From contig OZ037768.1 of the NCBI GenBank assembly GCA_964035545.1, positions 23,097,319 to 23,161,318 of the forward strand: a DNA stretch of 64,000 bases, read 5' to 3'. A model generated the notes under the pieces. It was not told the DNA's origin and ran no database searches. It saw only the letters and a list, made by a program, of their open reading frames with translations. Origin of the DNA: Bugula neritina. Its lineage: Eukaryota > Animalia > Bryozoa. Each line of letters begins with the position of its first letter. Within the stretch, counting starts at the first letter, position 1. The position numbers and the translations under genes were made by a program. Of the stretch, positions 39,940 through 46,486 are shown in pieces.

Positions 39940-40208
39940 TGTCTACAGCTCATTCTATGTCTACAGTTCATTCTATGTCTACAGTTTATTCTATGTCTAC
40001 AGTTCATTCTATGTCTACAGTTCATTCTATACTGTCTACAGTTAATTCTATACTGTCTACAGTTAATTCTATAGCTGACTACAGTTCTCTCTACAGTTCA
40101 TTCTATACTGTCTACAGTTAATTCTATAGCTGACTACAGTTCTCTCTACAGTTCATTCTATACTGTCTACAGTTAATTCTATAGCTGTCTACAGTTCCCT
40201 CTACAGTT
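39940..40208. repeat. 18-21-bp tandem repeat (TCTACAGTTCATTCTATG-like) in the Hv1 3' UTR region
   Basis: Imperfect tandem array starting ~20 bp after the stop codon. Confidence 0.85.
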
Positions 40209-41413
40209 GCCTCATGGCCTCACACGCTCAAACATTTTGTTCACTCTGTGTTGATCATTATAAATACTTTTTGTATTTTCACGCTTGAAAAAGTGTTATC
40301 GATTATATTTATTAACTATCAATGCATAGTTGAGTTCCAATCTTGTGTACTACATTGATAATTGACATTTTTTGTCATTGTATGTTTATTATTTAGTAAA
40401 ATCGTATTTCATCACTTGTATCAAGTCATTGACATTTTACTATGTTGTTTTTTACTTTTTAAATATTTTGTCATCTTTAATCCAGTTTGTGCTGATATTC
40501 TAGAACTAGTCAAATAAATGTTGAAGATAATGTTGAGTTGTGAGGACATTGATGGGAAGGGCGAGTAATTGTAATTTGGTGACAAGGGATTATTTAGAAT
40601 AGATGCTTGCGATAATTAAACTGACTATTAAAATAAAAATCCCTTTTAGACTTGGATTTGGAAATTCTAAGCTTAATGAAAATAAATATTTTTGTCCCCC
40701 ATAGCATGATCATGCAATCATTACAGTTAATTACTCCTAAATAATTGTATGCATTGATAGTGCTGCGTTTTATAAAACGAGTGTGCATGTAGACTACAGT
40801 TGAAATAAAATGGTGAAATAAAACTGTATTGAGCAACATTTTTATTCGACCTAATTAATTGTTATTAATTTAGAGCTGCATGCTGTTACTTGAAAAGCCT
40901 ATACTCTATAGTCTATAGCATAGGCAATTTCCAAGATACGAACACGTTTTGAAATGGAGTTATCATCTCCCAACAAACTTTCCGTTCCTTTTTCTTTACC
41001 ATGTGTGTTTCTACGCGATATAGTTGGTGTTATAACTGTTGTTTATAATTGTTTACTATAAGCTGTAAATCTTTGTTTGTGCATTTTCTCTTTTTGTTTG
41101 CTATTTTTTTTATACAATATAGATTTATTTGACAGTGTTTGTTGTTTCACAAAGTCCTGAATTCTTTAAATGATGGAGTTTTCATCTAATTAGAATTTCA
41201 GAAAATGAATTACATGACACGATAAATTATCGACGCGTAATATTACCACCAATTATGAGTTCATGTGGCTGGCCATTGACAACCAAGCAATCAGCTGGAT
41301 GAAAATTTCATCACTGGGTGGTTGCCTTTAAAACGTTGCAGAATTGTTTTAGCCAGCATAGTATCATTAAATCTGCTTTGGCAAAGAATTGTACCTTCAG
41401 CTTACAAACCTAA

Positions 41414-42469
41414 ATGTCTACTGTGGACTTGGTAAGTTTAATATAAATGAAGTGCGTCCCTTTGGGTAATAAATAATATTAATATTATTAATAATTAAAT
41501 CAAAGTTTAATATTATTAATTATAAAATTGAACTTGCGAATACCAAATCAAAATGAAAGTCAAAGGATATATCCATACTGATGCTGATAGTGATAGTAAT
41601 ACTAATACTAATAGTAGTAGTGTCTAGTCATGGCCTGATACTGATAGTGATACTTTCGTGATTATGATCATGATGTAAGTGATACTGATAGTGCTTGCGA
41701 CTCACGTCTCGCAATTACCATTCTGATTCTCATTCTATTACTATTAGTATTACTATTTCTACTTCTAGTTTCACTGTCAATTTAACTTGCTTTTAGTTTA
41801 AGTTTTGTTCCTAACTTTTTGTCGCATTCAATTTAGTTTAAACTTTGTTGAGTTGCAACTTTACATACTTAGAGTTGGTACCGACTGTTGACTAATCAAA
41901 TCGACTTATCGAGATATAATTGTAAAAAAATTTAATATTGTTTAAATTTCAAGCTATATTTATCATATCTTCATTGTGATGATGTTTGTTATAGCTGTTG
42001 ATTAGAAATTCGAACTGAGAATGTGAATTAATTCATGTTTTCATTTGAGCTAGTTTCTAAAATATGTTATTATAAGCTTTAAAATTGTCATGAAAACCCG
42101 AGAAAAAACAATAAACAGTTTTTATATATACAAACTTATAGTGGATCAATTCAAATTAAAATTGCGCGAATACATTACTGGTTCAAGTCTTTTAATTGAT
42201 GCAGTTATTTAAATCGTTACCAGTAATGTTCCCAATGGCATAAACTTTTTAGTTTATAATCCAATTTGAAAGGTTTTCTTGTAAAATTATTAAGAAAATA
42301 ACATTAACTCTAACTGTAACTGGCTAAACACTCTTGGAAGTTAATTAAATGTTCCCTGTGTTGTTTGTAGGATCTAAACTGCTTTTGCTTCTCAGCACAT
42401 ATGTTCGTTGGACGATTCGGAAGCAGCGACTTCTGCCTAGCGCAACACGCCTCCTGCTGCTGCTGCTAG
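41414..42469 (+). CDS. Spliced upstream ORF (38 aa) in the PRL 5' leader
   Basis: ATG at 41414, donor TTG|GTAAGT after 41431, acceptor TTTGTAG|GAT at 42371, TAG at 42467-42469. Peptide MSTVDLDLNCFCFSAHMFVGRFGSSDFCLAQHASCCCC. Confidence 0.65.
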
Positions 42470-42735
42470 CGACCTAATCACTTGGCCGACTGAATTTCGT
42501 AGAAAGTTGTTCTTTCTTGTTGTTTATGTAACGAGGTTTCCACATTATCCCTCGACTTCCACAGATGGGTTAATTAGTCTACAGCATAAAAATTTAGTGC
42601 AATACAAAATTTACTAACATAAATTGATCTTCCAAAATTGTAAACTCAGCCGAGCTGGTGGTTATTGCTTGGTAGTGGTAAATAGCAAATGTACAAATGT
42701 TTGACAAAAAACTAAGCACAAAGAAGGCATTCAAC

Positions 42736-45700
42736 ATGGCCGCCACTGCTCCTCGTCTCACCGTCAATGGTAGCGACGGTGGAGTGTCCGAGATAAAGTT
42801 CAAGCAGATGAAGTTCCTCATTACTGACAGACCAACTGAGGCCACTCTCGACCGCTACATCGAGGTAGTTGTTAATATCACTGCTGTTTTTTTAAAACTA
42901 AAAAACTGATGCATCTAGTGCAAGCAACTGTTAGGTTAGTTTTTCAGGGGGTTGTTATTTTCCTTTTATTTTGTCTGCAGCCTGGCAGATATGTGATTCA
43001 TGCTTATCTCTGTGAGTTGTTTTGATTAGAAAACCTCAACAGCTACTGTAACAGTTTTACTTAGCCTGTAGCTGCCTTGTCTATACTCTAGGAGGCTGTA
43101 GCATTCTATAGTGTTGTCTGATTGTAGGAGCTAAACAAGAACAATGTAAAAGAAGTGGTTCGAGTCTGTAAACCAACTTATGACGCCCACAAACTGTCGG
43201 ATGTCGGCATTCAAGTCATCGTAAGTTATCAAGTTGGGCGGCATCGACCATATCTTATCTGGCAGTCATTTTTGGCATTCATTAAATTCCAATGGAATAC
43301 CTCCTGGTGCTCCATAGTGCTTTGTACATACACTTATCTATCTTGTACCCCCCCCCCCCCCTGATAGGGGGTATAGCACTGTGTGGTATAGCACTGTGTA
43401 GTATAGCACTGTGTAGTATAGCACTGTGTAGTATAGCACTGTGTAGTATAGCACTGTGTAGTATAGCACTGTGTAGTATAGCACTGTGTAGTATAGCACT
43501 GTGTAGTATAGCACTGTATAGTATAGCACTGTGTAGTATAGCACTGTGTAGTATAGCACTGTATGGTATAGCACTTCGTAGTATAGCACTGAAGAGTGAA
43601 TCATCAAAGCTGTTGTCACTCACACCATATCCTGTTCTCCTTTCTATGCAATCAACTGTTTACACAAGTTTGTATGTCTTTTGTATAACAAACAACTCTC
43701 TGGCTTTATGGTCATTGTCTACTTGCCTACTGCAGTGTGTGTTTACCTGCTTACTGCAGTGTGTGTCTACCTGCGGGGTGTATATTTACCTGCTGTCTAT
43801 GTTACAGGACTGGTCCTATGCCGACGGACAGTCTCCACCTGTAGATGTTCTCAACAAGTGGCTGAACCTGGTGAAGGCCAGATACCAGAAGAGCTCTGAC
43901 AGCTGCATTGCTGTCCACTGCGTGGCAGGTTTAGGCAGGTGAGTTGAGCGCTGCTGGGTGCTGACTCTGTAGACTGCTGACTCTGTAGACTGCTGACTCT
44001 GTGTAGACTGCTGACTCTGTAGACTGCTGACTCTGTAGACTGGTGACTCTGTGTAGACTGCTGACTCTGTGTAGACTGCTGACTCTGTAGACTGCTGACT
44101 CTGTGTAGACTGCTGACTCTGTAGACTGCTGACTCTGTAGACTGGTGACTCTGTGTAGACTGCTGACTCTGTGTAGACTGCTGACTCTGTAGACTGCTGA
44201 CTCTGTAGACTGCTGACTCTGTGTAGACTGCTGACTCTGTGTAGACTGCTGACTCTGTAGACTGCTGACTCTGTGTAGACTGCTGACTCTGTGTAGACTG
44301 CTGACTCTGTGTAGACTGCTGACTCTGTGTAGACTGCTGACTCTGTAGACTGCTGACTCTGTGTAGACTGCTGACTCTGTGTAGACTGCTGACTCTGTAG
44401 ACTGCTGACTCTGTGTAGACTGCTGACTCTGTGTAGACTGGGGCAGCAGTTGCTCACTTGAGTAGTTGAGTAGTATATAATGCCTGCCAGCTCATTGTCT
44501 GGCTGCTATTAATGCATCAATCAATAAGTATATTACCATCCTAGCTGTCAATAGATGAACTTGCTCATGATATGTATTCAGTATTGTGGTTGCTAGACTC
44601 TGTTATACACTCTTAACTCCACAGCCTACTGCCTCGTGGCATAGCATACGTGACCCTCACTTGTGTGGGATAAGAAGGTCGTTAGCCTCCTTAGCTGGCA
44701 CATGCCCTGTCTTTATTAGCCAGCCATTGCACCATCACCCTGTGTCCAGTAGTATAACTAACTGTATAGTATAACTAACTGTATAGTATAACTAACTGTA
44801 TAGTATAACTAACTGTAGAGTATAACTAACTGTATAGTATAACTAACTGTATAGTATAACTAACTGTAGAGTGTAACTAACTGTATAGTATAACTAGCTG
44901 TAGAGTATAACTAACTGTATAGTATAACTAACTGTAGAGTATAACTAGCTGTATAGTATAACTAACTGTAGAGTACAACTAGCTACTGTTGCAGGGCCCC
45001 AGTGCTGGTAGCCATTGCCCTCATGGAGCTGGGGATGAAGTACGAAGACGCAGTGTCTCTCATCAGAACGTAAGCTGACCCTCTATTCACCCCTTTAGAC
45101 CTCGTAGTTACATGAACATATGTTGATATTCAAGTGGCCACCCACTTGTTTGTTACAATCTGTTCACTGCACTAACATAGCTGCACTAACATAGCTGCAC
45201 TAACATAGTGACTATATTGTTGAGCTGCTGCCTGGTATGCTGTTTCTGTTTATATTACCTGCCCTCCTGAGTGCAGTTCACTTATGTAACGACTTTACTT
45301 ACATTAACAAAATACCCAGTATTATTCACTTAAATACCCACTATTCTTCACTAAAATACCCAGTATTCTTGCTGATGGTGTCGTTTGGGAGTGGAATTTT
45401 ACAAACCTTCAGTCCAGGATGTATTGCATCATAATTGGAAATTACTTGTTTATTGCAGTTTATTGCGCAGTTAGTCTTATCAATACACTCTATAGAGTCA
45501 TCATTGTGAAAACATAAATATTTTTCCTAAATTTGCGTATCAAAAACCTGTTGTGTGTTTAGTCGTAGTTGAAACCAGATTTGCTGTGTGTGTCAAAACC
45601 CAAGCAATGGGAATAATATTGATAGGGTTTAACTTGCAATGCCTTTGTCTGGAGATATTCACTTGTTGTTACCTAGCAACTACTTAACATCTTGTGGTGT

Positions 45701-46486
45701 CGCAGACCTTTTGAAACGTGGATATAAATCAGGTCTCTAGCACGTCTTTCACCACGTGACCTCACTTATCTCAGCATAATGTTTGTTCAGTTACTGGGCT
45801 GTTGCTGGGTGGTTACTGGGCAATGTGGCAAATCTCCCCCAAACTCTCCTTCCTTTCACAGTTGGTGTCTCTCCATCACCTCCATTGTTGTTGATAGCTT
45901 CATATGAATATGCAGACATTCTCAAACTGATTACCATTATTCATGTGTATTAATTGTGTTGATTGATTGAATGTAGTTGATTCATCATAGAAACTATGTA
46001 GGTTGTTGCTAGCCTAGATGAATGTATGCCAATGAATGTACACTAGTATTACATATATACTCCGTAGCTACAAACATTCAATGGCCACGTGCGCTAATCA
46101 AAGAAGTAGGTGCAGTAATGGAGAAATTGAGAAGAGATTAGGAATGTAGCAACAAAGTCGGGTTCTCATAATTATTTCAACCAGCGCCCCAAACTAAAAT
46201 TTATTAAAAATATTAAAGAACTTATGCTATATGCATTTCTCTACTACTGAACCACCACTTTAAAACGCAACTGCTTGGGTTGATACTAGTACAAGTGTTG
46301 ATAAACTGTTGATACTAGCACAAGTGTTGATAAACTGTTGATAATGTGCCGTCTGTTGGTTGTAGAAAGAGAAGAGGTGCCATCAACCAAAACCAGCTAA
46401 ACTTCCTGGAGCACTACCGAGCCAAGTCTAGGCTGACAGACAGCAAGGGCAAGGACAAGGATGCTGCCGTGTGCTCCATCCAGTAG
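42736..46486 (+). CDS. PRL-1: Phosphatase of regenerating liver (PRL / PTP4A family), ~182 aa, 5 coding exons
   Basis: Exons 42736-42864, 43128-43220, 43808-43938, 44995-45069 and 46366-46486 (549 nt). Motifs: MKFLITDRP, VVRVC, active site HCVAGLGRAP, KRRGAIN, and C-terminal CaaX box CSIQ. An alternative in-frame ATG lies at 42697. Confidence 0.95.
43370..43590. repeat. 15-bp minisatellite (GTATAGCACTGTGTA)n
   Basis: About 15 copies in a PRL intron. Confidence 0.95.
43958..44440. repeat. 16/18-bp minisatellite (CTGCTGACTCTGT[GT]AGA)n
   Basis: About 28 copies of two length variants in a PRL intron. Confidence 0.95.
44750..44985. repeat. 17-bp minisatellite (TAGTATAACTAACTGTA)n
   Basis: About 13 copies ending at the acceptor of PRL exon 4. 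Confidence 0.9.

Follow-up and report, generated by a model that had tools for sequence, protein, structure and literature searches.

The leader of the PRL/PTP4A phosphatase gene in the window (the whole stretch of 64,000 nucleotides analysed here) contains a spliced upstream open reading frame (uORF) of 38 codons. We read it, with a probability of about 0.7, as an orthologue of an ancient conserved-peptide uORF of bilaterian PRL/PTP4A leaders, with a putative repressive role in cis. The uORF is transcribed and spliced, it is conserved in related species and it is orthologous to uORFs in the PRL leaders of other phyla; its effect on PRL translation is judged by analogy with vertebrates.

All features described here lie on the forward strand. 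The uORF starts with the ATG at 41414-41416, in the context TAAATGT with an A at position -3, and ends with the TAG at 42467-42469. Its first part (41414-41431), consisting of the ATG and five further codons (MSTVDL), is separated by a phase-0 GT..AG intron of 939 nt (41432-42370), inserted after codon 6, from a second part (42371-42469) of 32 codons plus the TAG, which encodes the motif GSSDFCLAQH and a tail specified by a (TGC)4 run. The intron begins with the donor GTAAGT at 41432 and ends with a polypyrimidine tract followed by TAG, the last base of which is 42370. A split 38-codon ORF with a 939-bp phase-0 intron had been proposed in the initial annotation, and its coordinates and peptide agree exactly with ours. 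The same annotation placed the end of the uORF some 230-270 nt before the PRL start, which compares with measured distances of 227 nt to the in-frame ATG at 42697 and 266 nt to the ATG at 42736. In the 216-Mb genome the uORF was found once, in a search for which the two exon parts were queried separately and in which the match was to the exon-2 part.

The predicted 41431/42371 junction is present in RNA. Contigs from four public runs were placed on 40000-45999, and the exact 939-nt skip (41431|42371, GT..AG) was found in those of three runs (X4, X2 and X12), which come from different studies, X4 being an oligo-dT run; coverage of the fourth (X1) begins only at 42441. One X4 contig of 1441 nt comprises 41269-41431, 42371-42864, 43128-43220, 43808-43938 and 44995-45069 and then runs into the last PRL exon, with uORF and PRL coding exons joined in one contig. 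Furthermore, L021, a natural transcript of this species or of a closely related strain, encodes the identical 38-aa uORF at its positions 112-228, with one synonymous difference. This transcript, used as the spliced reference throughout, was reached via the database protein P0001, which is identical to the window PRL over the 44 residues searched (coding exon 3).

Leader exon 1 extends from about 41269, where the longest RNA contig begins, to 41431. In two relatives, the transcripts start at a conserved ATTGACAAC, corresponding to 41275-41283 in the window, and a TA-rich box is located about 30 nt upstream of this conserved start, so that transcription probably starts near 41270. The idea that 42370 is a trans-splice acceptor, as with the spliced leaders of a tunicate, was ruled out because the contigs join 41431 in cis and the closest named PRLs are lophotrochozoan. 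The uORF intron harbors a dispersed AT-rich repeat (GATACTGATAGTGATA-like) at about 41570-41693, with at least 58 matches across the chromosomes; it is the sole repeated part of the region and draws many chimeric contig joints in run X12. In the same run, a lower-depth contig extends unbroken from 40790 to the exon-1 donor (41432), and a minor GT..AG joint connects 41921 to 42371. These two observations may reflect an upstream or alternative first exon, or carry-over of DNA or pre-mRNA.

The gene 3' of the uORF had been named PRL in the initial annotation, and this identity holds: its five coding exons encode a P-loop (CVAGLGR) and a CAAX box (CSIQ), and the closest proteins are PTP4A. The exons are located at 42697-42864, 43128-43220, 43808-43938 (encoding a WPD-like loop and the P-loop), 44995-45069 and 46366-46486 (ending with the CAAX box and the stop codon; RNA end matches are loose here), and PRL is single-copy in the 216-Mb genome. 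A protein search with coding exon 3, and then with P0001, returned the PRLs of four close relatives at 73-78% identity. Below these there is a gap to 64%, where the named proteins are from lophotrochozoans (Lingula and many molluscs) and arthropods. By this ranking the window animal is an invertebrate and probably belongs to the lophotrochozoans.

Coding exon 1 contains, in addition to the ATG at 42697, a second ATG in strong context at 42736. The N-terminal extension of 13 codons that starts at 42697 (42697-42738) is in frame in all six species of the clade formed by the window animal and its relatives, where its length varies from 13 to 22 codons, and it follows the peptide pattern M-[FIL]-[DE]-x-[KR]-x-[SN]-x-x-K. 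Since this in-frame extension is conserved as a peptide, PRL translation probably starts at 42697 and not at 42736; for annotation this means that the PRL protein of the clade probably begins 13 codons 5' of the obvious ATG. Use of both initiation sites, giving two isoforms, is possible. Zebrafish ptp4a1 likewise has an in-frame N-terminal extension, which comprises 11 codons and is Ser/Lys-rich. In the PRL introns we found three minisatellite arrays (43370-43600, 43960-44440 and 44755-44985) with units of about 16-19 nt, which account for long but spurious entries of 216, 213 and 113 aa among the six-frame ORFs.

The leader holds several smaller elements besides the 38-codon uORF. A 10-codon uORF at 41299-41331 is specific to the window and missing from the relatives' leaders. 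Downstream, a two-codon uORF (ATG-GGT-TAA, 42565-42573) is found about 95 nt past the main uORF; it occurs as ATG-GGN-TAA in all six clade leaders, and the leader of Pomacea has ATG-GGG-TGA (L032:389-397). The ATG TAA at 42526-42531 is polymorphic: an A-to-C change at 42531, seen in the RNA runs and in L021, extends it to a uORF of 15 codons, which ends at the stop of the two-codon uORF. An out-of-frame uORF of 8 codons (42689-42715), present in three of the six clade species, overlaps the PRL start. The additional AUGs of the window leader (41299, 42526, 42565 and 42689) could be the source of much of any repression. Two leader blocks stand out as well. One of them, GTGCAATA at 42597-42604, is invariant in all six clade leaders and was also found in the PRL leader of Riptortus (L035:456). 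The other, AGCCGAGCTGGTG at 42648-42660, has its first 12 bases invariant in the window and five relatives, with an A as last base in L020 and one further change in the L021 allele. Both could be binding sites for proteins or miRNAs. The stretch from the uORF to the PRL start yielded no conserved RNA structure (RNAalifold -3.4 kcal/mol, no real covariation).

Conservation within the clade was analysed with transcripts and genomic contigs of relatives (L009-L020 and L024-L027), all of which carry the uORF. It comprises 34-38 codons and starts with MSTV in the window and in L010, L020, L013 and L024, while the copy in L019 is partial. According to the codon alignment, its start, stop region and frame are kept across five related species, with indels that are all in-frame, and its AUG is the 5'-most one in every relative transcript that extends upstream of the uORF. 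In genomic contig L024 a GTAAGT...AG intron interrupts the uORF behind codon 6, as in the window, and this uORF entered the analysis as two codon blocks; an unspliced form from another relative (L018) displays the same acceptor, with the evidence here confined to the acceptor. Within the clade, 12 of 38 alignment columns show no variation, and synonymous codon changes occur at the conserved residues Leu8, Ala15, Ala30 and Gln31. The within-clade dN/dS ratio (Nei-Gojobori) is 0.3-1.1. Taken together, the alignment indicates a reading frame that is clearly maintained, with only moderate constraint on the peptide. The leader just 3' of the uORF stop is unalignable in the clade except for short blocks. 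Polymorphism within the species amounts to one (synonymous) change in the 117 nt of the uORF versus nine in 226 nt downstream, a suggestive direction with numbers too small to carry weight.

Outside the clade, a mammalian PTP4A1-like protein (P0008) was used as protein query, and the vertebrate leaders compared are those of PTP4A1. For a shark, the PTP4A1 gene model (P0187) includes ...GSGDYCQAQH... within an N-terminal extension; in zebrafish ptp4a1 transcripts (L028 and L029) the shark-type extension is a separate uORF of 37 codons (L028:178-291), whose end precedes the coding region by about 105 nt. Almost unchanged, this uORF, termed canonical here, also occurs ahead of PRL in the gastropod Pomacea (L032:101-196), the brachiopod Lingula (L039), the insect Riptortus (L035:57-203) and a further animal (L038:328-423). 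In zebrafish (L028:157-291) and Riptortus (L035:15-203), extra in-frame ATGs upstream provide for versions of 44 and 62 codons, respectively. The canonical copies evolve with a dN/dS ratio of 0.04-0.12 (dS being saturated), from which we conclude that the PRL uORF family is a true conserved-peptide uORF.

The window uORF shares 7 of 11 residues with the zebrafish uORF over G-S-x-D-[YF]-C-x-A-Q-H (BLASTP E = 8e-5 in a single comparison), and the position of this C-terminal motif, counted from the Met, differs by one residue between the two. In the window the motif reads S-S-D-F-C-L-A-Q-H, in the clade [SE]-[GD]-[YF]-C-[LVP]-A-Q-H and in the canonical copies S-G-[DE]-Y-C-Q-A-Q-H. Comparison by hhalign of the clade profile with a profile of the zebrafish, shark, gastropod and insect sequences gave E = 1.6e-5. 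The peptide alignment that the initial annotation had suggested bears out a relationship; the dN/dS analysis, suggested there as well, gave the canonical and clade ratios stated above. The strongest evidence for homology is the gene structure. A phase-0 intron after uORF codon 6 was located with both splice sites in Pomacea (transcript versus genome) and in the shark PTP4A1 gene; in Lingula an exon begins behind an AG at the same point of the uORF, which documents the acceptor only. The window uORF shares with the family its position in a PRL leader, the phase-0 intron after codon 6 and an open frame of about 31-38 codons. As length, position and intron are shared, and the motif in large part, orthology is the only reasonable reading, and the homology to the vertebrate PTP4A1 uORF claimed at the outset is upheld. 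We would assign the window uORF to the family by this orthology, a conserved TFMEF block being regarded as a trait and not as a defining feature. Judging from its conservation, the fish and shark uORF is presumably the published Mg-sensitive uORF of vertebrates. A full-text literature search for the motif YCQAQH gave no match, and PRL/PTP4A is absent from the Drosophila CPuORF list of Hayden & Bosco and from Mackowiak 2015.

How far the window copy has diverged becomes evident from the block G-x-T-F-M-E-F, defined in the present analysis from six canonical sequences. TFMEF is invariant in zebrafish, shark, gastropod, brachiopod and L038 and appears as LMEF in the insect; an in-frame ATG inside it, in good context, is kept in all canonical copies. 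The block is absent from the clade, where [ST]-A-[HY]-x-[LF]-[VI]-G stands in its place. In addition, CQAQH has lost its Gln in the clade, with Leu (as in the window), Val or Pro at that position, and the window has Phe for the Tyr. Comparison with the vertebrate PTP4A1 uORF reveals likeness in the leader of an orthologous gene, in length (37 versus 38 codons), in the Met-Ser start, in the codon-6 phase-0 intron, in the C-terminal G-S-x-D-[YF]-C-x-A-Q-H followed by 6 codons and in a stop 100-270 nt before the main start. On the other hand, the FCG..G.TFMEF block is unrecognisable in the window, the Gln of CQAQH is Leu, and a Cys-rich tail takes the place of a GVYAEK-like one. The uORFs of Pomacea, Lingula, Riptortus and L038 resemble that of the window in gene, leader place, YC.AQH end and intron (Pomacea; acceptor in Lingula), yet they have 31 codons (at least 48 in the insect), are nearly identical to the vertebrate form and stop one codon past AQH. 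Among these PRL uORFs, the window clade is the outlier.

The initial annotation further suggested that seven Cys residues, including a CCCC tail, may add sensitivity to metal, redox state or lipidation. This idea found no comparative support, because the CCCC tail is a (TGC)4 run specific to the window: in the relatives the peptide ends with one or two Cys, the invariant Cys of the clade are limited to Cys28 and Cys35, and the canonical uORFs of other phyla have no Cys at their end. The distance from the motif to the stop is one codon in the canonical protostome copies, three in most clade members and six in the window and in vertebrates. With a range of 1-6 codons, any arrest is unlikely to be strictly coupled to termination.

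PRL phosphatases govern Mg2+ transport by CNNM and TRPM7. Hardy et al. (2019) reportedly defined the Mg2+-sensitive uORF switch of vertebrate PTP4A1/PTP4A2. In the leaders of vertebrate PRL-1/2, the uORF represses translation at normal Mg2+, with a dependence on both its coding sequence and AMPK/mTORC2, and repression is relieved when intracellular Mg2+ falls (PMC11855589, a review; PMC10083557). When the human PTP4A1 CPuORF is frameshifted, a reporter is derepressed, which reveals a sequence-dependent action in cis in human cells (PMC7530721). Mg2+-responsive uORFs exist for TRPM7 as well (cited in PMC11855589). The uORF described here is unrelated in sequence to the TRPM7 uORFs, as it is to the fungal arginine attenuator peptide, the AdoMetDC MAGDIS peptide and the plant sucrose and polyamine CPuORFs.

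By analogy to the vertebrate system, scanning ribosomes would translate the window uORF, whose start has an A at -3. Mainly through its C-terminal G-S-x-[DG]-[FY]-C-x-A-Q-H, the growing peptide would then slow or block the ribosome or hamper re-initiation, and few ribosomes would get to the PRL start 227 nt downstream. Relief of the block would allow more PRL to be made, the relieving signal in vertebrates being low intracellular Mg2+. On this basis the window uORF probably represses PRL in cis, be it generically or through its peptide. Responsiveness to Mg2+ is a more tentative proposal, to which we give somewhat less than even odds, and cis-repression is more likely than retention of Mg2+ sensing: as the core has diverged, the latter is uncertain. 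With TFMEF missing and constraint relaxed, retention of the vertebrate function can only be inferred.

One alternative is that the uORF is orthologous but decayed or simplified. It would then hinder scanning in a generic way, whatever its sequence, as one of several upstream AUGs, with peptide arrest and Mg2+ sensing lost. The TFMEF core is gone, the clade dN/dS of 0.3-1.1 contrasts with 0.04-0.12 elsewhere, the C-terminal length is variable, the (TGC)n tail is microsatellite-like, and the same leader contains further conserved uORFs. Constraint within the clade is far weaker than in the other lineages, for which reason a peptide-specific action may be altered or lost. A pure barrier, however, requires just an AUG and neither a conserved peptide nor a conserved length, whereas all five species whose uORF is complete retain the C-terminal motif along with Leu8, Ala15, Gly20 and the terminal Cys; synonymous changes occur at several of these positions, and indels are all in-frame. 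We regard simple decay as unlikely, and give no more credit to a different outcome of the same divergence, namely that the otherwise near-invariant bilaterian PRL uORF was rebuilt in this lineage (TFMEF replaced, the Gln lost and a conserved C-terminal Cys gained), such that sensing or arrest may differ. If true, the rebuilt uORF would be a natural "specificity-swap" variant of a nascent-peptide sensor.

Two further explanations are less likely. Very deep conservation of the peptide in other phyla is compatible with any peptide function, including that of a stand-alone micropeptide acting in trans and placed 5' of PRL for co-expression. We consider this quite improbable, since the human PTP4A1 CPuORF acts in cis and sequence-dependently on a reporter (PMC7530721) and the peptide has neither a signal sequence nor a recognisable domain. 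A search of the clade uORF profile against 1.84 billion proteins yielded one marginal repetitive match only and hence no relatives, which says little, as uORF peptides are rarely called as proteins. Still less probable, and largely refuted, is a chance ORF, or a conservation confined to the nucleotide sequence (splice signals, promoter-proximal or RNA elements). Within the clade, the nucleotides of codons 1-4 are near-invariant, which the initiation context or the 5' splice site could explain. Against a non-coding origin, the indels leave the frame intact, synonymous changes are seen at conserved residues, other phyla encode the peptide motif with different codons and the search for a conserved leader RNA structure was negative; the clade codon alignment, the hhalign comparison, the intron position in Pomacea and shark and the canonical dN/dS all point in the same direction. 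With start and frame kept in five relatives, the intron position documented in two of these (in one by the acceptor only) and the canonical form present in other phyla, the uORF is beyond chance.

An orthologous uORF with a probable repressive role in cis thus is our preferred reading, and at the level of sequence the locus is best described as a strongly diverged orthologue of a known regulatory uORF. The Mg2+-sensitive uORF of PTP4A is already known and has been termed "evolutionarily conserved"; its pan-bilaterian conservation together with the internal phase-0 intron may not have been described before. The occurrence of the uORF in molluscs, a brachiopod, an insect and the window animal, with its internal intron also in the gastropod and, by the acceptor, in the brachiopod, dates this leader element to the bilaterian ancestor, and the question of whether translational Mg2+ feedback on PRL is ancestral becomes testable in invertebrates. 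The diverged uORF of the clade represents a natural mutant that keeps only the C-terminal motif, and as such it can show which residues the mechanism needs.
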